A DNA stretch of 64,000 bases. It comes from Basidiobolus meristosporus CBS 931.73 (taxonomy: Eukaryota; Fungi; Basidiobolomycota). Both the position numbers and the translations under genes were made by a program. The notes beneath the pieces were generated by a model that was given only the letters and a program-made list of their open reading frames with translations, ran no database searches and was not told where the DNA came from. Shown in pieces: positions 4,799 to 19,493 of the stretch (the stretch's first letter is position 1; each line of letters opens with the position of its first letter). The DNA lies in assembly GCA_002104905.1 (NCBI GenBank), contig MCFE01000110.1:62001-126000 (forward strand), given 5' to 3'.

Positions 4799-5129
4799 AT
4801 CAATTTGTATGCATGAAAAGTAAGTGAAATAATTGAGTCAGGAAGTAAGGATTGTGAAAAAGAGGCAATAGCCAATCAATGTACACAAACATAGGAGGTA
4901 ATCAAGTGTCTAGGATCAGAAAGTGAGCAAATTGGCAGGGAACTAATTAAAAGCCATGTATATATTGTTGTAGTGAAAAATTTTGACAATGTTTTTGTGA
5001 AATCTGGGGTGCAATTATTTTTCAACAGTCTCTACATGATGTCCTGACAGGATCAATACCACTTAGTCACGGGACTTTAAATCTGTGATGGCCTGTTGCT
5101 GGGATCATCACAATAATTTCTCATAGGGT

Positions 5130-5755: not shown

Positions 5756-6851
5756 ACTTCTCCTACCAGAGCCACCACCTCCTCTGTTATAGAGAGAGCA
5801 GATATCCCACTGGTGAGCAAAGCAACAATGTCAAATGCCAGACATTTATCAAATGCCCATAGTAGAATTTTGGAGCAAAACATGACACACACGCACTTGA
5901 GACATACCTTGACATCACTTATATGCTTGTTTTCCCAGGACCTTATAAAAATATGTATTCAGCTTTTTCAATCAATCAAATATCAGATGAGGCTTAATCA
6001 AGTGGCTCTTTCAATCACTTTGATATCTTCAAAACCCCAGCAACATATATCGCCCAAATGAAGCTACCAAGCCGTACTGTATAGCTAGCAATTAACTAAA
6101 CACCAGGCCAATTGTTTGCAATACACTTGCCTCCAAGATATTGCTGTAGGACCATTGACTTGCAAAGTCAATGGGATATTAAATAATAGTGTACCAGATG
6201 GAAGGCGTATGATAATCGCAGAGCTATTTAAATGTGGTGACGGAATAGCTGTATTCCCACCACTGGAATCCTTATCACTCAACCCCTCAGAGCGAGGATA
6301 CGCAGGATTCTGGATTCACCCGCTGCCTCTGCCATTCCAGGGTTTTCTAGCAGTGTCCATTCCGCAGATCAATCGGGATCTCAATTAGTACCTTCCTGTC
6401 GCCCCATATCCATATCCAGCAATGGGTAAGCTGCTGTGGATACTACTACTGTAGCCTTGATTGGTAGAAATAGCAGTTTCTTCAGCGTAGCTTACCGTGC
6501 GAATGATCTGTGACTCCAAGTCAATCCTGTTCATTGGACTAATCAGGGATTTCTTCACAGCAAAAATCGTTCGATGCCGCCCATCTGTGATAGATAGAGT
6601 GACCCTACAACCGCAGTCAGCTGTGATTCGCCAGCAGCTTGTTGTTGCACGTAAACCTAACGCAATAACTACAACTAAACACATGATGATCAAATATTAG
6701 TCTTTTTTGTACAATATCAGTCAGATAGTGGTTAGCGACCAGTAGTCACTCTCCAGATTTTGAATATTGCCTTCTTATACCTTCAGGAAAATTCCCCATA
6801 ACAAACTATAGCCACTTCCATCAACCTTCACTATAATCCCGTCAAGCAAGC

Positions 6852-9323
6852 ATGAGTTGGTCGTTGAGTGGCAATGAATATACGGTTGACTCCTCTAGTG
6901 GTGAATCTGCAGTCAATTGGGAGGACAGCATCTGGGAATCCGATAGCATTGCTGCCGAGTATGTGGAAAGTGGCTACAGTCGAGAAGCCGCTACTCGGTC
7001 CAAGTCTGCCACCAAAAACAAGCTACTCAGTCGGATTTTCAAATCCTCAGGTATGGACTTATGACCCGCCTCCATTTTCCGTGGAAAACTCAACTTCGAT
7101 TCCTTTGGATCCTACACTTCTAGAACGTACGTCCAACTCGAATGGATTGCGCCGTGCTTTCAGCTATCCTCATAAGTTTATGATTGATTCCAAGCGCTTG
7201 GAGGAAAGCAAGCGACGTCAAGGCCGATTGCTTCTGGTTTCTCTGCTTGAGAACTTTTGTGCACTGTATGATCAATCGCCTCAACATAACCGGAAGCTTT
7301 TCTTCATGATATGCAAGACGTTGAGCGGGATGGGAGTGAGTACCTTTGGTTACTTGTTCGATCTCGGGAGCCCAAGCCTAATGTTCCTTCCTCACAGCTC
7401 ATCGACGAAGAGTATATTGACGAGATGGCTGGGGTTAGATCAGCCTACATGTCCACTTTCAAGCAACTGGTGATTCAGGCCATGGCTACCATGAAGGTAT
7501 ATTACTTGCTCAACGGCAATATTCTTGGCGAATCTTGCTAACGAGCTTTTTCACTTGATTTTCAGCAAGAGGTAGAACCAAAGCCATTACAAAGAATGAT
7601 GTCCATCGGTTATCGCAACGATAAAGGCAGCCCGGACAACAGTGACTACTTTAGCGGGAACCATGAGACGCACAACAGCTTGTATGTACGCTATTTCAAT
7701 CGCACAGAATCCTTCAGGAATAACGGATTTTGACCCTTCCTAGCGAGACCCCATCGGTAAAGAGAACCTACTCCAAGCTGTCCAAAATGAGCTTCACCGA
7801 CATATTGGAGCTGTACAACTCCCGGTACGAAACCGATTTTATAGAGGTGCGCAAGCTAGGCAGAGGTGGCTTTGGCTCCGTTTTCAAGGTAGGGAACATG
7901 TCCTCTGTGAGAGTGATGGGTACCCAGACGTACTGACTCACTCGGCGCGCTCTAGGTTCAAAATAAGTTGGACGGCTCAGAGTACGCCGTCAAGAAAATC
8001 CGCCTGAGATCTGAAAAGACCAGACACGAGAAGATCTTTAGAGAAATCAAATTTCTGTCAAAGCTCGATCATCCCAATGTGGTAAGGTACTATGGGTCGT
8101 GGCTTGAAAACGTCAAGCGATCCTTTGATGACGAGAGCGAGGAGGATCTCGACTACGAGTACGACCACGATGAGTTCTCCCAGGATCTGGTTGCCTCCCC
8201 TTTGCAAAGCCAAACATTTGACTCCGATCTCCAAGCGGTTCCCGACGACGCGAGTGAGTCCCTGACCAACTCCGAAGACAGCAACTCCATCGAGTTCGCC
8301 TTCGACGATCCAGACTCGGTTGCGGACTCTAAAGACGTGGCAAGCAGTCCATCCCAGAGCACGCTTATTCATCTGGGAAAGGAGACTCAGATCATGCCCT
8401 TCGATGATTTTTCGGCGTGTGAATCCCAGGATGCGCCTGTAAAGCCACCTGCTGGCATCGCCAACATGGAGCTGACCCTGTTCATTCAAATGCAATTGTG
8501 CCACAGCACGCTCTACGACTACCTTGATGCTCGTAATCGAGCCATCTCCAACCCACAAAACGGCATCCCGATTGCCATCGACTCCTCGGCGAATCTTCAG
8601 CTTTTCAGGGCAATCGTTCAAGGCGTTGCCTATATACACGACCAAGACATGATCCACCGAGACTTGAAGCCAATGAATATATTCTTGGACTGCAGCATAG
8701 CTTCAGACGACGATCCCGAATTTCTAATCCAAAACGTGGATGTGCTTGTTCCAAGAATCGGGGACTTCGGACTAGTCACTGGCATGGAAGACTTCATCAC
8801 ACCCAGCTCCCGCCCTGATTCGCGCAAGCAGAGCATTTGCAGTGGCTCGAGCTCCTCTCGCACCTCCAGAGTCGGCACAATCACGTATGCATCGCCCGAA
8901 CAGCTAGCTGATCCACCTCAGATGTATGATCAAAAGTCGGATATTTACAGCTTAGGCATCATCTTATTCGAACTGTATTGCCCGTTCTCGACACTGATGG
9001 AGCGGGCCCAACTCCTGCAAAACCTGCGCCATGGTGTGCTCCCAGATGGCTTCCTCGCCAAATGGCCCAAGGAGGCAACCCTGGTCCTTTGGTTGATGGC
9101 CGAAGACCCCACCAAGAGACCCACTGCACGCGAAATCCTGGAGTTCGATATGCTCATCCCTCCAACATATGGCTCCTCCCGCGATAACGACACTCAGTAT
9201 GCAGAGCTAGAGCGTAGAACAACTCAGCTGCAACAGGAAAACGAGGAGCTGCGTGCAAGATTGGCCGAACTAGAAACGCGCTTGAGTCGGTGCAGCTGTC
9301 AGCACACAGACTCACAAGACTGA
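6852..9323 (+). CDS. hri1: HRI-like (EIF2AK1/Hri) eIF2alpha kinase, multi-exon
   Basis: The N-terminal LLLVSLLENFC...RKLFFMICKTLSGMG block resembles the HRI N-domain. Kinase motifs: SRYETDF, LGRGGFGSV, YAVKKI, HPNVVRYY, long acidic insert, LFIQMQLC, IHRDLKPMNIF, IGDFGL, GTITYASPEQ. C-terminal coiled coil. The first intron (about 7050-7122) is phase-compatible. Confidence 0.88.
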
Positions 9324-9606
9324 GTTGTTGGGGTTGTAAATTCATTCCGTCTTCGCTCCGGCCAAATTTAGTAGAACTGCTTTGTCTATATTCTTTTAAT
9401 CCTTCAGCCTCCTTTCATCAGACCCCTTCCTTCCCTAATGTCACTCACTGAACCCATTGCACTAATGAGGACCTCCCTCCGATTCCAACGCATTCCCGAC
9501 TCCTCTCTATGTCAGCCATCATTTCTGTTCCATTGCAACATTCATATCAAAATATATACGTCGGTCGGAACACCTGCCCTTTTATTCAGCGCTGTCTGCC
9601 TAATAA

Positions 9607-10363
9607 CTAATATATAATCGAGGGAGCCTGCCTATGAAACTCATCGCTCTCGAGTTGGTTCAAGATGAAGTGAGCAACATCTGCGCGGGAGATTCGGTTC
9701 GACCCGAGATCAAACCCGGTACGGTATGTACCAGTCAGACCGGTATCGGTGAGTTGGCCTGGCCGAACAATAGTCCAGTCAAACTCGGGCAAATCCTCAC
9801 GTATCTGCTGCTCCTGTATCTCTTTGTCTGCCAAGGGCCTACCAAGTACTAACCAGAGAAGAAACCCGGTTATCCAACTCACCGAGTTCCAAGAGTCGCC
9901 AACGCCTAGAACAGACCCTCTGTTAGCCACAAATTGAGCAACCAAATCCATATTGCTTGTTACGGGTTACCAATCGAAGAGACCACTATCATCCGCCTGA
10001 CATTATACTTCTTGACACTGTGATTGATGAGCTTTTGTGCTTTTGAGCATATTTCCACGTCTGGACCGCGCAGGCCCCCTCCCAGGGAGACAATAACCGC
10101 GTCGTGGCCTATGGACTGGTCAGCCTGAAACAAGCAAAGAGTCTTACTTGCTGGAAGAAACGCCTACCTTGCACTACTTGATCCACCTTTGACTGCTCCA
10201 GGGCGTCTCCTTGCACAAGAGTCAACTCTGGGCTGGAGGGCAGCTTCTCTTTTGCCTTTTCAATATCGCGCACCAAGGCAGTGACGGTCAAACCTTTTTC
10301 CAAGGCCTGCTTAATAACCTCCACACCTGTACGCCCCGTACCACCCAGTATAGCTAGTTTCAT
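9607..10363 (-). CDS. NAD(P)H-binding flavin reductase / biliverdin reductase B-like protein, multi-exon
   Basis: MKLAILGGTGRTG Rossmann motif, VTALVRD, VQGDAL, DAVIVSLG, RRMIVVSSIG, DWTIVRPGQL, ISRADVAHF. Confidence 0.85.
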
Positions 10364-10700: not shown

Positions 10701-13700
10701 CTAAAATTCCGCCTCAAACTTATTAGACGCTTCGTCAAGAACCGCTTTGAGCTTCTGCTGCTGGTATATGAGTTCTTGGTCCAGCTCGATCTTCACTTCA
10801 TCTATCACCCACCGAGAGGTGCCGTATCCTTTCTTGTCGTAAGCCAGGGAGAAAGCCCGGATTTGTGAACGGCGGAAGAGACCGCCCACTGCAACATAGA
10901 ACGTATCCGTTTTCCCGCGCCCGAAGGATCGTCCGAGCAGAGAATCGAGGGGAAATTGGCGGACGTAGAAGCTTTTGGGTCGGAAATCGCCAATGGTCAG
11001 CGTGACAACCCCGTTCGCGCCTGTGCCTTCGAAGTGATACCAGGGCGATTCGGAATTTTTGGCCGTCTTGATCTGGATACGTATCAGGAGCGGGAATTCG
11101 GTATTGAACTGCCCTGGCATCAGTTCTTGGAGTAGGTTTATGTAGTTGAACATTCGGTGTCCGTTCCCGGCCTTTAACCTAACAATGGAAGTAACGTGTC
11201 TGTAGCCAAGGGTGAACATGTTCAATGCAGAGTTATGAAGGAAACTGAGGTCGCCATGGCAAATGGGATCCTTGGGGTCTTGGAAGTGGTATCCAGACAT
11301 TATGTTATGGAAAGACGTCCAGTGTTTACGAAACTCCATGTTACCAACCGGAGGGGCACCAAAGGTAATGCATTGAATGTAGTTGAAGCCTAGCGTGCCG
11401 TATGCGTTGGTGAAATGGTTGGCCATATCTACGGCGGCCAGAGTGGCCATAGCCCCGCCGAGGGAATGGCCGGTGATTAAGATATGCTCCACAGCCTTCG
11501 CTCCTCCCATCTGGGCAACAAGGGGATCAATCACATCCAGAATCTGCTGGCGAAGCGCGGAGTAGTAATTTAGGAACCCACGATGCACCTTGATTTCGCT
11601 CGATTGGTCTATATAGTAGTCGATCATGGCCAGATTAATATCAGTAAAGGCGTCCTTCATTGTGGAGGTCCCGCGGAAGGCCACAACGATGGTGCGTGTT
11701 TTCTCGTTGTAGCCGATGAACCCGGTGGCGTCCAGATTTGGGATCTGGGATTTGAGATGTTGGTATATCACGCATCCCATATTGGGGACCCGCACATTAA
11801 TGCTCTCCTCCACATCGTACACAATGGAGGACATATTCGCACACAGCAAGGCGTTGTACGAGAAATCCGAGTTGTCGCGGGAATCGTGGTCGTCGGCCTT
11901 TCTTCGCCAGATAGAGCCATCGCATCCAACGCCCCAGATATATCCCTCCGCACTGATGTGGACCTTTCGAAGCTTCCCTCCGGTGGAAACAAACCGATTA
12001 TCTACCCCCAGCCGATAAACGTCCATGAATCTATCCACCCCCCATACTGCGCCGTTGGCACCGACGCTGATATGTGAGAGAAGTATCCCCGAGACGGCCT
12101 TCCATCCGATTTGAGAGTTGTATTGATAGACCTGGCCATTGAGTGCGATTCCCCAGACATTCTGAGCATTGCCAGCTGCGATCATCTTCAGCGGACTCTT
12201 TGGTATCTTCCACTTGCTAACAGTCTTCTCTAGGATCAAACTTTTCGATTTTGCAATGGCCTTGAGTCTTTTCAGGGAAGACACTTTGGGCACTTCGGAA
12301 ATTAGCGCCCATTCCAGTTCCTCTCTTCTCCAAAGGTATCCATCCTTGTCCACTGCCCATAGCACCCCATCAGCTCCCACGCAGACACAGCAGTACCGCT
12401 CTGAATCGACATCCCTTTCCCACACATTCTCTTTGATTTGTCGGTAGACGTGGCCGATAGCATCAATGGCCCATGTGTTGCTCTTGGAGCCTACAGACAC
12501 ACCCACGAATGAGTTCTCCGTCGGTTTCCAACGGCTTATCCTTACCGGCCCACCATTACTCTTTTTCCACGTGTCCTGGGCTCTTCTAACCCCCATCACG
12601 GTGCCTTGATCACCTATGCTTATCTGCATCAAATCGCTCGGAGGCCCTGGAACCTGCTCCCAGTGGTATTCGGTATTGTAGGTGGACGACTTCTCAGGCA
12701 TAGGACTTGACCAATCCTTCACCCATTCTTGGGTTTTTGAGCCCAGAGGCCTGGCATAGAGCGTATTGAAGGAATCTGTTCCGACCAAGAACCACTCCTC
12801 CTGAACCTTAGTCAATGTAATATGAACCAATAGACAGGGCGGCATATTGGCAATCTTGGTCCAGTGGATATGGGAGCATGATGTCGAGTAGATCGCTGTA
12901 CCACCCTCCTCGGTCTCTTGGACGCTGAAGAATTCAGGGCGTTTGGTGGAGCAGCACAATGTCTGCATCAGCATTGGGGTCATTGCCCGGACCCCAACCT
13001 GGCTCCACTCACGCTGGACAATATTCAAGGCCCAAATCACCCCGTCGAAATCGATGGTATACAACTGACTCTGCGCGGTACCTAGTGGAGATTGCATCAT
13101 ATTAGCCCATGAGTGTAACATCGGGTGGATTTGTCAGAACTTACGCTCGGTGATAAAATTCTCCACGAATCCTTTGAACCGTCTTGTTGTGTTACCCGGC
13201 CAGTTCATCACCCATTTGCCTCTAGGGACCGAGCAGCCCCATAAGATCCCCGTCTCCGTGAGACCAAAGAGCTTATTTTTCTGCCCATAAATCACCTGGA
13301 AAGCAGTTGGAGCCTTTTGAGGCCAGTCCGCAATCCAATCATGTGCCTCAGGTAGATCTTTCCGAAGTTTGTATTTATTTGTCAACTGAAGGCACCACAA
13401 CTCACCACGTAGCGTCAATCCAAACAGGCATTCATTACACACTGTCAGGCATTTGAATCGCTGCGGGGGTTTCTTTGGAAAGTTCTTCAACCATTGCCCT
13501 GACTCGAGTCCCAGTAGCCACAGTTGATAGCGCTCGGTTAGAATCCACAAATTATCACCCCATGTGATAAGCATTGGCAAACGGCTGTGGTATTTCAAAA
13601 GGTCATCCATTGAACAACTTCAGACGATGCAGGAAACCAAACTTACGGTGGGAACACATGCTTGTTCTGTTCAGCACCAGTTTTCGGCAGAAGCTTGTGT

Positions 13701-14490
13701 TTCGGCCGTTTGCTAAACATCCCGCCAAAAGATAACGGTAAATGGAACGAATCTCGTCAAGGTGGCCATTATAAAGTTTACCGTACATATGGATCACGGA
13801 GTTGTGCTCGATTCCTTTCTTGACCGCCTTGAACATCAACTTGAAAGGCTTGGCGAGTCCCTTTTTCCATTTCTTGATGGAAGGCGGCGACCCGAACCTA
13901 TAAAATGCCGCCAGGTCGGTAGGCGAGTGCACGGAAGTACAATCGAACTCGACCTCCGAGCTCAGGTACTCCTCTTCCTCCTCCGTCGCTTGCGCCTGGA
14001 TCTTTTGGACTTTCGGTAGTGGGGTCTTGAAGGCCTTTATCCAGCTCACAAGCTCATCCTTGGTGTTGGTGTGAAACTGAAAGACCCGGCCGTCGACCTC
14101 CACACGAAAACTGTACTTCTCTCCTTCATTACTATTTTCTGGAGATATTCTTGATATAGAAGAGCAGTTTAGAATGACCGGGTCCCGCAGGTCCATAACA
14201 CTGCTGCATATGAACATGGTGCGCGAACCCGCTTCAAACGCCTGGTAAAAGCGATACAGCTGATTAAAATTCCCCGACAACGTATCAATGCCATGTCGCC
14301 TGAGTACTTGCTTAACCTCAGCCATTGTAGCGAAGCGCTCATACAGAACAAGATAGTACTCCTCCTCTCCCCTCTTGACTTTTCCATCGTTGAGAATGAG
14401 TGCTTTGATGTCGAAGAGTGTGGAGGAGTGTTGGCTGAGAACGGTGTCCGATTGTGGTGACGAGTATTCAGAATTTAGTATAAGGCTCAT
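10701..14490 (-). CDS. Multidomain protein of about 1196 aa: PH + beta-propeller repeats + tectonin repeats + class-3 lipase + PLAT/LH2
   Basis: Proposed exons 14490-13787, 13712-13647, 13584-13145 and 13081-10701 total 3591 nt. The GT-AG introns are 74, 62 and 63 nt and all phases are compatible. PH motif FRVEVDGRVFQFHTNTKDELVSWIKAF. Tectonin repeats such as VGADGVLWAVDKDGYLW. Lipase motifs IVVAFRGT, VHRGF, TGHSLGG, TFGAPPVGN. PLAT motifs EGTGANGVVTLTIG, FGRGKTDTFYV, WVIDEVKIE. Confidence 0.85.
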
Positions 14491-15191: not shown

Positions 15192-16134
15192 ATGTCTGCC
15201 GAATACCGTATCCTGTACTTTCCCATCAGGTAAGAGGTCGTCTCGACTAGCCAAGACCCGCTGTTGTCATGCTTCATGTTGACCTGATCCTCTGTTCGAC
15301 AGAGGTCTTGCTGAAGAGCTCCGTCTTTTCCTTGAAGAAAAGAACATCTCATACACTGATGAGACTTTCGAGGACTGGATGGCTGTGAAGCCTACTTTGG
15401 TGCCTCTCCACCAAGTCCCAATTGTCTGGAACGGGGACATCAAGATGTCTCAGAGCAAGGCTATCTTGAGATACATGGCCAATAAGCATGGTAGGTGGTC
15501 GATGTGCTCCATGAAGTATGCCCTTCTCTCTTTGCTGAGCATGATCTGTGATAGGCGCCAATGGGAAGAATGCGAGAGAAGCTCTTCAGGCTGATATCGT
15601 TGCCGAAGCCACCGTAAGTATATCTGAATGCTTAGGGTTTGGCTGATTGGTAGGCAGCGTTCTGATCTAATATTCTCGAACCACATCGCTAGAATGATTG
15701 CCGTCGCAAGTTTGTTGCGCTAAGCTACAACCCTGATTTTGTAAGTTCACTACGTCACCACAGTTCACTCCGATCCTTTCCTAAATTAGTATGTTAATCA
15801 TGTACTTCAGAAAAATCTCAAGACCGCATACATCGAGGAGACCATCCCTTTCTACATGAAAGCATTTGAGTATTACTTGGAGGAGAATGGCAACACTGGC
15901 TACTTCGCTGGCAATGACTTCACCTATGCTGATGTCTGCGTGTTCGACATCACTGATAACAACCTCCTCTTGAACCCAGATGCTTTGAATAAGGAGCAAT
16001 ACCCCAAATTGCACAAGTTCTACCATGACTTCAAGAACCGCCCACGTATTGCTGCTTACTTGGAGAGCGAAAGAAGACCTAAATATGCTAATGGATATAT
16101 TGCTTATTTCCATGGAAATGAAAACACCATTTAA
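15192..16134 (+). CDS. Glutathione S-transferase GST1 (Tyr-type, Pi/Mu/Sigma-like), 5 exons
   Basis: MSAEYRILYFPIR|GLAEELRLFL, HQVP, SQSKAILRY, FTYADVCVFD, RPRIAAYL. Four GT-AG introns. Confidence 0.92.
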
Positions 16135-16577
16135 GTACCTTTACTATAGCAACGTGCTGGAAACCCCATGCAAATAGTAAAATAATAAAGTATTCTGAGT
16201 ATAACAAATCTACCTTGCAAGTTGTTAAATGTTGAATTCACATATATATATTGGCCCGTTGAAAGTACATTTAACTTTCGTTACAAGGGTCTTCCATAAT
16301 TTTATGTGAGTATCGATGTTATGGCTAAGTTGAAATATCTTGCAGCGTCCGTTACTTCTATTTTACTGGTTGGTTGGCATCTAGTGTAATAATATGATCT
16401 GTGTTACCAGGCTTCTACATTGGGCAAATAAAAAGGGTGGTAAACCTTCTTTCACAATCTATCTCCTGGATTATTAATACGAACAACGTGTTATGCGAAA
16501 TGGCGCCAATACTATCCCTTAATAAGGCTTTGTTTTCGAAATGCTTGATTACATCTGCAGTTCGAATCCGAGGTGTA

Positions 16578-16584
16578 TTAGTAA
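16578..16584 (+). promoter_or_regulatory. Putative Yap1/AP-1 response element upstream of GST2
   Basis: Exact TTAGTAA 221 nt before the ATG. Confidence 0.45.
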
Positions 16585-16798
16585 TCCATTTAGATCAATG
16601 TTACTGAATACCCAGACGAAAGAGCATAGTAGAAGCAATCCAAAGTCTAATGATTATGGGCATAGAGGTGCTAGGTTGAAACCTCACCTGTACAACCTCC
16701 TAACCTAATTGCAGATGCTTGTCAATTTTGTATATAACATCAACCAAGGCACATCATCACACCATCAACACACTCTCAAGTCTGAGATATCTTCACCC

Positions 16799-17742
16799 AT
16801 GCCCGCCGAATACCGCATCCTGTACTTTCCCATCAGGTAAGAGGTCGTCTCGACTAGCCAAGACCCGCTGTTGTCATGCTTCATGTTGACCTGATCCTCT
16901 GTTCGACAGAGGTCTTGCTGAAGAGCTCCGTCTTTTCCTTGAAGAAAAGAACATCTCATACACTGATGAGACTTTCGAGGACTGGGCCACCCTCAAACCT
17001 ACCTTGGCACCCCTCCATCAGTTACCTATTGTATGGAATGGGGACATCAAGATGTCTCAGAGCAAGGCTATCTTGAGATACATGGCCAATAAGCATGGTA
17101 GGTGGTCGATGTGCTCCGTGAAGTATGCCCTTCTCTCTTTGCTGAGTATGATCTGTGATAGGCGCCAATGGGAAGAATGCGAGAGAAGCTCTTCAGGCTG
17201 ATATCGTTGCCGAAGCCACCGTAAGTATATCTGAATGCTTAGGGTTTGGCTGATTGGTAGGCAGCGTTCTGATCTAATATTCTCGAACCACATCACTAGA
17301 ATGACTGGCGCCGCAAGTATACTGCACTTTGCTACAACCCCGAATTTGTAAGTACACTCGTCTTGCCTTGGAGCGCCCAGACTGTTCTCTGGAGCGGTGC
17401 GCTAACCAAATGCCTTAGGATAACCTCAAGACCGCATACGTCGAGGAGACCGTCCCCTTCTACCTGAAGGCATTTGAGTATTACTTGGAGGAGAATGGCA
17501 ACACTGGCTATTTCGCTGGCAGTGACTTCACCTATGCTGATGTCTGTGTGTTTGACAACATCGACAACAATTTACTCGTGAATGCTAGTACTTTGAATAA
17601 GGAGCAATACCCCAAATTGCACAAGTTCTACCATGACTTCAAGAGCCGTCCACGTATCGCTGCTTACTTGGAGAGTGAAAGAAGACCCAAATATATTAAT
17701 GGACACACTGCCCGTCTTGGTGGCTATCAGAATGATGCTTAG
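16799..17742 (+). CDS. Glutathione S-transferase GST2, 5 exons
   Basis: Paralog of GST1 with the same intron positions. C-terminus YINGHTARLGGYQNDA. Confidence 0.92.
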
Positions 17743-18317
17743 CATACCCATAATATCGCTATCACTGCCAATACTCGGCGAGCACTGAGTGTATCAGCAT
17801 AGATCAGTAGTAACTCACCATTAATAAATGATACGCTAGGGTTGAGCAATCTCAATATTGTTGGTACTAAAGATCATCCGACTTCCATTCACGTCAGGGA
17901 GTAATAATAGTAACTCATCCAGTATGTTCGATACATGTAGACCAAGGGAATCCAGCTGTACTAGAGAGTTGGCGGGGTTGCATGAATGAAGGTATTTGTT
18001 CGCTTTCCAATTATGGTATGGGGAAAATTGTGGCAACTTAATTCCTGATAAACTTTAAGCGAAGAATCAGGTTAAGCAGGGCATTTGAAGTTGATTGATG
18101 CACATGGTTGAGTACCGATTGTATGCAAGAAAAGCACATAATGGGAATGGTTGGCGTGACTGTTCAAGGTCAGCATATATTTCATTTTAGCAACTTACTA
18201 TTGGATTACGATTGCCTCCCGGAAGTAACGTCATCGAACAAGGCAAATCGCATCCAATATTGCAAACCCATTCGGTATTTGGGCTGCACCGTGACTAAGG
18301 GATATCTGCTTGGATAA

Positions 18318-18324
18318 TTAGTAA
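18318..18324 (+). promoter_or_regulatory. Putative Yap1/AP-1 response element upstream of GST3
   Basis: Exact TTAGTAA 238 nt before the ATG. Confidence 0.45.
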
Positions 18325-18555
18325 TGTATCTCCAGGCTAGCCAATTATTGATACAACGATGTGAAGTTGGGCCCACTTGGTACGGTACTCTACCGGGTAA
18401 TCAACATGTTTCTGGCTTGACACTGATTATCTGGGACTCCAGGATCGCTTCGTGTGACAACCTAATCTGATCGCTATTGATGGTTGTATGTATAAAACCA
18501 ACCTCTCTGGTGCATTCTGTGTCATCTCATTCAACGGCTAGTAGTTTACTCATTC

Positions 18556-19493
18556 ATGTCAACTGAATACCGCATCTTGTACTTTCCTATTAGGTAAGAA
18601 GTCGTCTCTTACCTCTAGGCTTACTGTTTTCTTACCTTTCGGATTGCTATTCCGATTTGTCAGAGGAGTTGCTGAAGTGATTCGTCTTTTCTTGGAAGAA
18701 AAAGGCCAGCCATATGTTTCTGAGACAGTGGAGTATTCTGATACATCATCCAAGGGATGGGCCGCCGTGAAGCCCACAATACACCCTTTGCAGCAAGTTC
18801 CCGTCTTCTGGGATGGTGATTTCAAACTACTGCAAAGTAATGCCATTCTAAGATATCTTGCCCGCAAACATGGTAAGTGTTCCATGCAACACACGAAGTC
18901 CTCAACTTGTCTCATAATCAACTGAAATAGATGCCTATGGCAGGGATAATAGAGAAGCTGCCCGGGCAGACCTTATCGCCGACGCAACCGTAAGCGTAGC
19001 CATTATGTACTGTTCAACCCCCGAGTTGTGTTCTGATGAGACGCATTGTGATTCCTTTAGAACGACTGGCGTCACAGGTTTGTTGCACTCAGCTTCAATA
19101 TTGATTTTGTAAGTTCCATCATATGCTCCATGATCCATTTCTTCGAATGCGAATTTAACGTGATCCCCCTAGGAAACCCTCAAGGTTGCATACATCAAGG
19201 ATACCATTCCCTTCTACTTGGGGGCATTCGAGCACTTCTTGGAGGAGAATGGCAATACCGGCTACTTCGCTGGTAGCGAGCTCTCATTCGCTGATGTCTG
19301 TGTATTTGACATCACTGACAACAACCTCCTGTTGAGCCCTAATGCGTTAACGAAGGAGAAATACCCAAAGCTGCACAAGTTCTATCATGACTTCAAGAGT
19401 CGCCCACGCATTGCGGATTACCTGGAGAGTGATAGAAGGCCCAAATACATTTTCGTTGATTTTGCCCAGTTTCAGGGCTACCAGCGTGATTAG
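18556..19493 (+). CDS. Glutathione S-transferase GST3 (most divergent paralog), 5 exons
   Basis: MSTEYRILYFPIR|GVAEVIRLFL, QQVPVFWDGDFKLLQSNAILRYLARKH, LSFADVCVFD. Confidence 0.92.

Follow-up and report, generated by a model that had tools for sequence, protein, structure and literature searches.

The minus strand of a 64,000-nucleotide (nt) stretch of the Basidiobolus meristosporus CBS 931.73 genome (contig MCFE01000110.1, positions 62,001 to 126,000; the window) carries, at 10701-14490, a locus that on sequence grounds is one intact intron-containing gene, predicted to encode a cytosolic multidomain enzyme of 1196 residues. All coordinates are window positions; 10701-14490 corresponds to 6001-9790 of our locus L001, on the same contig. 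On balance, sequence and structural models favor reading the product as an active lipase targeted by its lectin and PLAT parts. The original prediction, drawn from the letters of the DNA, described five parts in one protein, and this architecture is borne out by Pfam for the tectonin and class-3 lipase domains, by predicted folds for the PH and PLAT domains, and by a probable second propeller.

Gene model

Three minus-strand open reading frames (ORFs; 14490-13603, 13610-13134, and 13121-10701) join through three GT-AG introns into an uninterrupted coding sequence of 3591 nt, in which 1196 codons are followed by a TAG stop. Intron boundaries were checked base by base, and the exons were then joined by script. 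The introns, of 74, 62, and 63 nt, all begin with GT and end with AG, and two of the three open with GTAAGT. Their guanine-cytosine (GC) content is 40-43%, against 48-52% in the exons, and the frame is closed by a stop eight codons ahead of the ATG.

The spliced protein has its best database matches in P0001 (K7432_004023, Basidiobolus ranarum, 1170 residues) and P0002 (K493DRAFT_314232, CBS 931.73, 1091 residues). They show the same full architecture and domain order as the window protein, with collinearity, matching introns, and the catalytic residues kept where modeled. They differ from it in being only 38% identical and in lying at a different locus, and both are uncharacterized. Because P0001 and P0002 are mutually syntenic and the window gene is elsewhere, sequence comparison makes P0002 the paralog of the window gene in the same genome and P0001 the B. 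ranarum ortholog of P0002. The gene and its parts are as follows.

10701-14490, minus strand: whole gene, four exons, 3591-nt coding sequence, 1196 residues plus TAG; from splicing and collinearity with P0001 and P0002
13787-14490, minus strand: exon 1, residues 1-234 plus 2 nt; the Joint Genome Institute (JGI) model P0031 has the identical ATG and identical intron 1
13713-13786, minus strand: intron 1, 74 nt, GTACGG..TTTAG; also spliced in P0031, with paralog introns at most 7 alignment columns away
13647-13712, minus strand: exon 2, 66 nt, encoding a basic linker; mini-exon counterparts of about 17 residues in the P0001 and P0002 genes
13585-13646, minus strand: intron 2, 62 nt, GTAAGT..CACAG; at the same alignment column (261) in both paralog genes
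13145-13584, minus strand: exon 3, encoding the first blades of the N-terminal propeller; from splicing and the repeats
13082-13144, minus strand: intron 3, 63 nt, GTAAGT..ACTAG; paralog introns 1-2 alignment columns off
10701-13081, minus strand: exon 4, residues 405-1196 plus stop; the P0001 gene likewise closes with a single uninterrupted exon of 792 codons

The model aligns collinearly with P0001 and P0002 over about 1100 columns, crossing all three junctions. When the proteins are mapped back to their loci, both genes resolve into a long first exon, a mini-exon of about 17 codons, an exon of about 144 codons, and a long last exon. The offset of intron 1 relative to the paralogs falls within a poorly aligned stretch. 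The B. ranarum gene comes from a separate assembly and annotation, yet has the same four-exon layout. The open spliced frame, the collinear paralogs, and the matching introns together uphold the earlier claim that the three ORFs form one reading frame of 3591 nt and 1196 residues.

GenBank divides the locus among five same-strand products of 235, 58, 182, 158, and 172 residues (ORX98627.1, ORX98626.1, and others). Our profile search also recovered such fragments (P0031, P0008, P0009, and P0007), all on MCFE01000110.1. Two extra in-frame splices aside, the GenBank fragments match the model at 100% identity. The 235-residue fragment (P0031) shares the ATG and intron 1, runs into intron 2, and terminates there; the 58-residue fragment starts at an ATG within intron 2. 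The four-exon model improves on this public annotation. In practice, the analysis yields a corrected gene model; with the locus shown publicly as five unrelated small proteins, the architecture is hidden from searches by domain architecture.

The two extra splices remove 66 nt at 14307-14242 and 96 nt at 12293-12198. As introns of the main isoform they are judged unlikely; neither occurs in the paralog models. The 66-nt stretch encodes residues kept in both paralogs (RHGI, Y-FY). Both segments have an intron-like GC content of 43-45%. They may be annotation choices or minor isoforms produced by alternative splicing.

Domain architecture and predicted catalytic site

The spliced product divides into five predicted parts, with a low-confidence linker at residues 161-257.

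14011-14412, minus strand: PH-fold domain, residues 27-160, with a two-helix insert (residues 56-86) between strands 2 and 3; from AlphaFold2, Foldseek, and VIA-align
12657-13583, minus strand: N-terminal repeat region, residues 258-545, spanning intron 3; from its repeats, hhalign, and Atlas
11892-12656, minus strand: six-blade tectonin propeller, residues 546-800; from Pfam and a profile match to Tectonin 2 (Tec2)
11127-11864, minus strand: class-3 lipase domain, residues 810-1055; from Pfam Lipase_3 and a match to Rhizopus lipase
11463-11465, minus strand: codon of Ser943, predicted nucleophile in GHSLG; aligns to the Rhizopus lipase elbow, in an invariant column
11268-11270, minus strand: codon of Asp1008, predicted catalytic acid, second Asp of DPKDP; in an invariant column
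11157-11159, minus strand: codon of His1045, predicted catalytic base in GHRMFNY; kept in all relatives covering the site
10704-11096, minus strand: PLAT-fold β-sandwich, residues 1066-1196; from AlphaFold2, Foldseek, and Pfam in homologs

The lipase domain matches Pfam Lipase_3 (PF01764) with an expect (E) value of 1.7e-25 and 90 bits, against a cut-off of 22. Its nearest solved chains are lipases of Rhizopus (1lgy, 3.4e-15) and then Rhizomucor. Across an alignment of eight sequences, including distant relatives at 24-33% identity, the FRG motif, GHSLG with Ser943, and Asp1008 are invariant. P0002 is the one row without His1045, which lies within H-x(3)-NY, and there the gene model leaves the stretch out. 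Ser943, Asp1008, and His1045 thus form a firmly predicted, complete catalytic triad. The motifs picked out originally, an intact GHSLG with a candidate Asp in DPKDP and a candidate His in GHRMFNY, are all conserved in this alignment, which also identifies the second Asp as the acid. The class-3 triacylglycerol lipases of Rhizopus and Rhizomucor (1lgy, 1tgl) have the same Lipase_3 fold and a GHSLGG elbow. In contrast to those small, secreted, single-domain enzymes, the window protein is predicted to be cytosolic and to carry targeting domains on both flanks of its lipase.

Residues 546-800 are firmly assigned, from their sequence, as a canonical tectonin lectin propeller. Six blades can be read directly, and the Pfam Tectonin match (PF19193) reaches 8.7e-31 and 107.5 bits against a cut-off of 30. 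Among solved proteins, a family profile of the region picks out Laccaria bicolor Tectonin 2 (5fsb, 2.8e-47) and fish-egg lectin (4ruq, 5.2e-16). Tectonin 2 is a fungal defense lectin for O-methylated glycans. It shares the six-blade propeller, but is a lectin of 227 residues with no enzyme domain, whereas here the propeller sits inside an enzyme of 1196 residues. Like the predicted window protein, Tectonin 2 is a cytoplasmic fungal protein without a signal peptide (PMC13324453 and references therein).

Fold searches were needed at the ends of the protein, since the Pfam PLAT profile gave no match at the C terminus and phmmer searches with either terminal piece found nothing meaningful among PDB sequences. 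The AlphaFold2 model of residues 1048-1196 has eight strands and a mean predicted local distance difference test (pLDDT) score of 77. The top Foldseek match of this model is the C-terminal domain of clostridial alpha-toxin (1.3e-5, template-modeling score 0.64), followed by the PLAT domains of lipoxygenases, lipoprotein lipase, and pancreatic lipase. All 32 rows at E ≤ 1e-3 are alpha-toxin or lipoxygenase chains, both of which carry PLAT. The Pfam PLAT profile passes its cut-off of 23 in the homologs P0013 (28.2 bits) and P0015 (31.5 bits), which align across the lipase and C terminus of the window protein, and is weak in P0002 (0.044) and P0090. The PLAT assignment is thereby confirmed at the level of the predicted fold.

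PLAT serves to dock alpha-toxin, lipoxygenases, and pancreatic-type lipases on membranes. As in the window protein, it lies C-terminal to a lipid-acting domain in clostridial alpha-toxin and in pancreatic and lipoprotein lipases (in lipoxygenases it is N-terminal). The catalytic domains of these enzymes are, however, unrelated to the one described here, being a zinc phospholipase C, a pancreatic-type lipase, and a lipoxygenase, and none is combined with lectin propellers.

Preceding the canonical propeller, residues 258-545 contain about six W/F-rich repeats of 40-50 residues each. A profile of the region aligns to the tectonin region by hhalign with E 4.8e-4 and a probability of 32%, keeping the blade register. 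In Atlas, language-model features of the equivalent part of the paralog, and of window exon 3 alone, fall with Hyd_WA/Tectonin clusters at 0.92; the recognition score is low, which makes this a lead only, and the look-alike clusters come mostly from animals. We consider it probable from these sequence comparisons that the region is a second, divergent propeller of tectonin/Hyd_WA type with about six blades. The propeller repeats proposed originally are therefore visible as six repeats, but a Pfam scan of residues 258-545 gives no match, and their identity draws on the weak profile-profile alignment and the look-alikes.

The N-terminal domain has a PH fold in the predicted model. Seven strands and a C-terminal helix follow one another in PH order in the core, residues 27-160, at pLDDT 64-87. 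All of the top 50 Foldseek rows belong to the PH superfold, with weak E values of about 4e-3. VIA-align superposes 93-97 residues on the PH domains of IRS-1 (Z 10.8) and TAPP1 (Z 10.5) with a root-mean-square deviation of 2.2-2.4 Å. The Atlas look-alikes of this part are PH families exclusively.

The protein is predicted to be cytosolic. The first 30 residues have a mean Kyte-Doolittle value of -0.13, and the highest 19-residue window in the whole protein reaches 1.26; these low values indicate neither a signal peptide nor a transmembrane helix, and agree with the earlier remark that a hydrophobic N terminus is lacking.

A number of points weigh against our reading of the gene and its product. 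The three splice junctions rest on homology, and the extra GenBank splices, if used, would change the PH insert and one tectonin blade. Pfam PH (PF00169) matches at 1.3e-4 and 22.9 bits, below the cut-off of 25.1 and over the C-terminal half of the profile only, and Pfam PLAT (PF01477) gives no match on this protein even at E 10. The AlphaFold2 models were built from shallow alignments, of 3 sequences for exon 1 and 9 for residues 1048-1196. Finally, going by the sequence and the modeled strand positions, strands 1-2 of the PH fold lack the K/R-x-R phosphoinositide motif. Strand 2 opens with three Glu and two Tyr, acidic and aromatic where phosphoinositide binders are basic, and the paralogs are non-basic at this site too. 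Without the basic motif, lipid binding by the PH fold is not implied, and the proposal that it docks on membranes finds no backing in the sequence.

Paralogs, wider relatives, and genomic setting

The gene of P0002, on contig MCFE01000140.1, shifts frame twice in its last exon, at 5047-5087 and 6051-6118 of locus L005. The JGI model spans these shifts with odd "introns" of 41 nt and 68 nt, and P0002 thereby misses one tectonin-blade stretch and the stretch with the catalytic His, both of which are encoded nearby in other frames. B. ranarum also has P0010 (KAK9761488.1, 171 residues), a stand-alone fragment of the PLAT region on a 6.2-kb contig. Its sequence is close to that of P0001, so B. ranarum may have another copy, or the model may be fragmentary.

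We scored the family profile against 1.84 billion representative proteins and sorted the best 150 by the parts of the profile that they match. Among these, all five parts occur together in Basidiobolus only. Tectonin and Lipase_3 are combined in P0055, P0064, P0086, and P0097 (517-546 residues); P0011 has a weak ricin-B match followed by tectonin, lipase, and PLAT; and P0013, P0015, P0066, and P0090 combine lipase and PLAT. These bacterial and metagenomic relatives have the C-terminal module in the same order, with the same invariant catalytic columns and likewise no signal peptide, but are 22-30% identical to the window protein and lack the PH fold and the N-terminal propeller.

On the contigs of P0055, P0011, and P0013, genes are intronless and GC content is 60-69%. 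The P0011 gene (616-3501 of L004, a Logan contig) is intronless and bacterial-looking at 69% GC. The P0055 gene (3526-5079 of L002, a JGI metagenome contig) is intronless at 60% GC and adjoins a gene with a phage-tail-collar domain. P0013 has two-component and PspC genes as neighbors, a bacterial context. The gene neighborhoods of the bacterial relatives offered no clue to function.

A quick IQ-TREE analysis of the lipase domain (41 rows) gives a Basidiobolus clade with support of 99. This clade shares one weakly supported half of the tree (75) with metagenomic and bacterial lectin/PLAT lipases, and the plant and algal lipases lie in the opposite half. The named neighbors are bacterial (Microbulbifer, Cohnella). 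As the deep nodes are unresolved, a bacterial origin of the core lectin-lipase module is no more than possible; it would be in line with a report that 2-5% of gene models in Basidiobolus bear marks of bacterial ancestry (PMC7466969).

The architecture is real, rare, and uncharacterized. Among the papers covered, a full-text literature search returned none linking tectonin domains with lipases or describing these Basidiobolus proteins, in keeping with the original statement that the architecture matches no described protein. It is not unique, however. The whole arrangement is present in databases in two uncharacterized Basidiobolus proteins, the paralog and its ortholog, and its core recurs in bacterial and metagenomic proteins. 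The taxonomic survey proposed at the outset thus finds the full architecture already deposited, but limited to Basidiobolus and uncharacterized rather than common.

In the window, the gene is flanked by three glutathione S-transferase genes and an NmrA-like gene. The former (218, 218, and 224 residues) form a tandem on the plus strand at about 15192-19493, directly upstream of the lipase gene. Downstream are the NmrA-like NAD(P)-binding protein gene (9607-10363, minus strand) and a gene for an eIF2-alpha kinase of HRI/GCN2 type (HRI2_3H and Pkinase; 6868-9323, plus strand). Elsewhere the window carries Gti1/Pac2, m-AAA protease, KH-domain protein, GNAT, and bZIP genes. Its segment 40001-46000 has a GC fraction of 0.36-0.37, against 0.43-0.50 elsewhere, and a strongly negative GC skew.

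Proposed function and alternatives

If the lipase is active and targeted as we propose, the propellers would select a ligand on the target surface. If Tectonin 2 is a guide, the ligand could be a glycan such as lipopolysaccharide or an O-methylated sugar. PLAT, and perhaps the PH fold too, would seat the catalytic domain on the lipid surface, where the lipase would cut acyl esters of membrane or storage lipids. The independent recurrence of the combination suggests a functional link between lectin and lipase: in bacteria the lipase-PLAT unit is found behind different lectin-like heads, which argues that the two act together.

Several fungal chimerolectins (MOA, PSL1a, and CCTX2) unite one or more lectin domains and an effector in one cytoplasmic polypeptide, in an AB-toxin-like manner (PMC13324453). 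The window protein is predicted to have this layout, with Tectonin and Lipase_3 in one ORF and no signal peptide. MOA, PSL1a, and CCTX2 differ in having β-trefoil lectins and a papain-like or novel effector, with neither a tectonin propeller nor a lipase in any of them. Taking MOA and CCTX2 as the model (PMC13324453), we tentatively favor a role as a defense chimerolectin that would be stored in the cytoplasm and released when hyphae are eaten or damaged. The fuller proposal, which we regard as conceivable but doubtful, is that this would be the first tectonin-based chimerolectin of AB-toxin-like type. Two propellers in tandem would recognize glycans of microbes or invertebrates, after which the PLAT-docked lipase would destroy the target membrane; a bacterial-type lectin-lipase-PLAT module would have gained a PH fold and another propeller in the Basidiobolus lineage and then given rise to a small paralogous family.

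A lipase directed at internal membranes or organelles is nearly as likely as the defense role. Here the protein would be an endogenous housekeeping or stress lipase, brought by its PH fold, propellers, and PLAT domain to the cell's own damaged membranes, autophagic structures, or lipid droplets, an explanation that we consider rather unlikely taken by itself. Its cytosolic location without a signal peptide is consistent with such a role, as are the ordinary housekeeping genes around it and the plant proteins that join a membrane-targeting C2 domain to Lipase_3. A further parallel is animal TECPR1, a cytosolic protein with tectonin-type propeller repeats, a PH domain, and dysferlin domains, but no lipase or PLAT. 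The window protein resembles it in combining tectonin-type repeats with a PH domain in the cytosol, and the Atlas look-alikes of Hyd_WA/Tectonin type are mostly animal.

However, no dysferlin family is among the Pfam matches at E ≤ 0.1, nor is a TECPR1-like protein among the named matches. An orthologous relationship to TECPR1 was rejected because the dysferlin domain is absent from the Pfam matches, and this absence also counts against the housekeeping role. Confinement of the full architecture to Basidiobolus, among the best 150 of the 1.84 billion representatives, would be unusual for a core cell-biology factor. The match of the C-terminal propeller to the defense lectin Tec2 is very strong, and the bacterial relatives place varied lectin-like heads on the same lipase-PLAT unit.

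It is improbable that the protein is a sensor or adaptor whose lipase domain serves as a scaffold without catalysis, in the manner of plant EDS1/PAD4. EDS1-family chains do appear among the weak PDB matches of the lipase domain, and the PH fold and propellers supply many interaction modules. The best PDB matches, however, are the active Rhizopus and Rhizomucor lipases, and the Ser, Asp, and His persist in paralogs that are 38% identical as well as in distant relatives of bacterial type that are 23-30% identical. Least credible of all, to the point of being hardly tenable, is that the locus is several small genes or a decaying pseudogene: the five GenBank products and the two frame changes in the paralog gene would fit this, but the frame is open across 3591 nt once three short canonical introns are removed, all fragments follow the frame and order of the full-length paralogs, intron positions are conserved, the B. 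ranarum gene was independently annotated with four exons, and the residues of the catalytic site and the core are kept.

The guts of amphibians and reptiles, with their bacteria and invertebrates, are the home of Basidiobolus, which is also able to infect animals; this gives a targeted lipase ecological interest. If the proposed coupling of tectonin and lipase is true, it would represent a new effector chemistry, glycan-addressed lipolysis, in fungal innate defense. It would also provide a testable function for a domain combination that recurs in uncultured bacteria.

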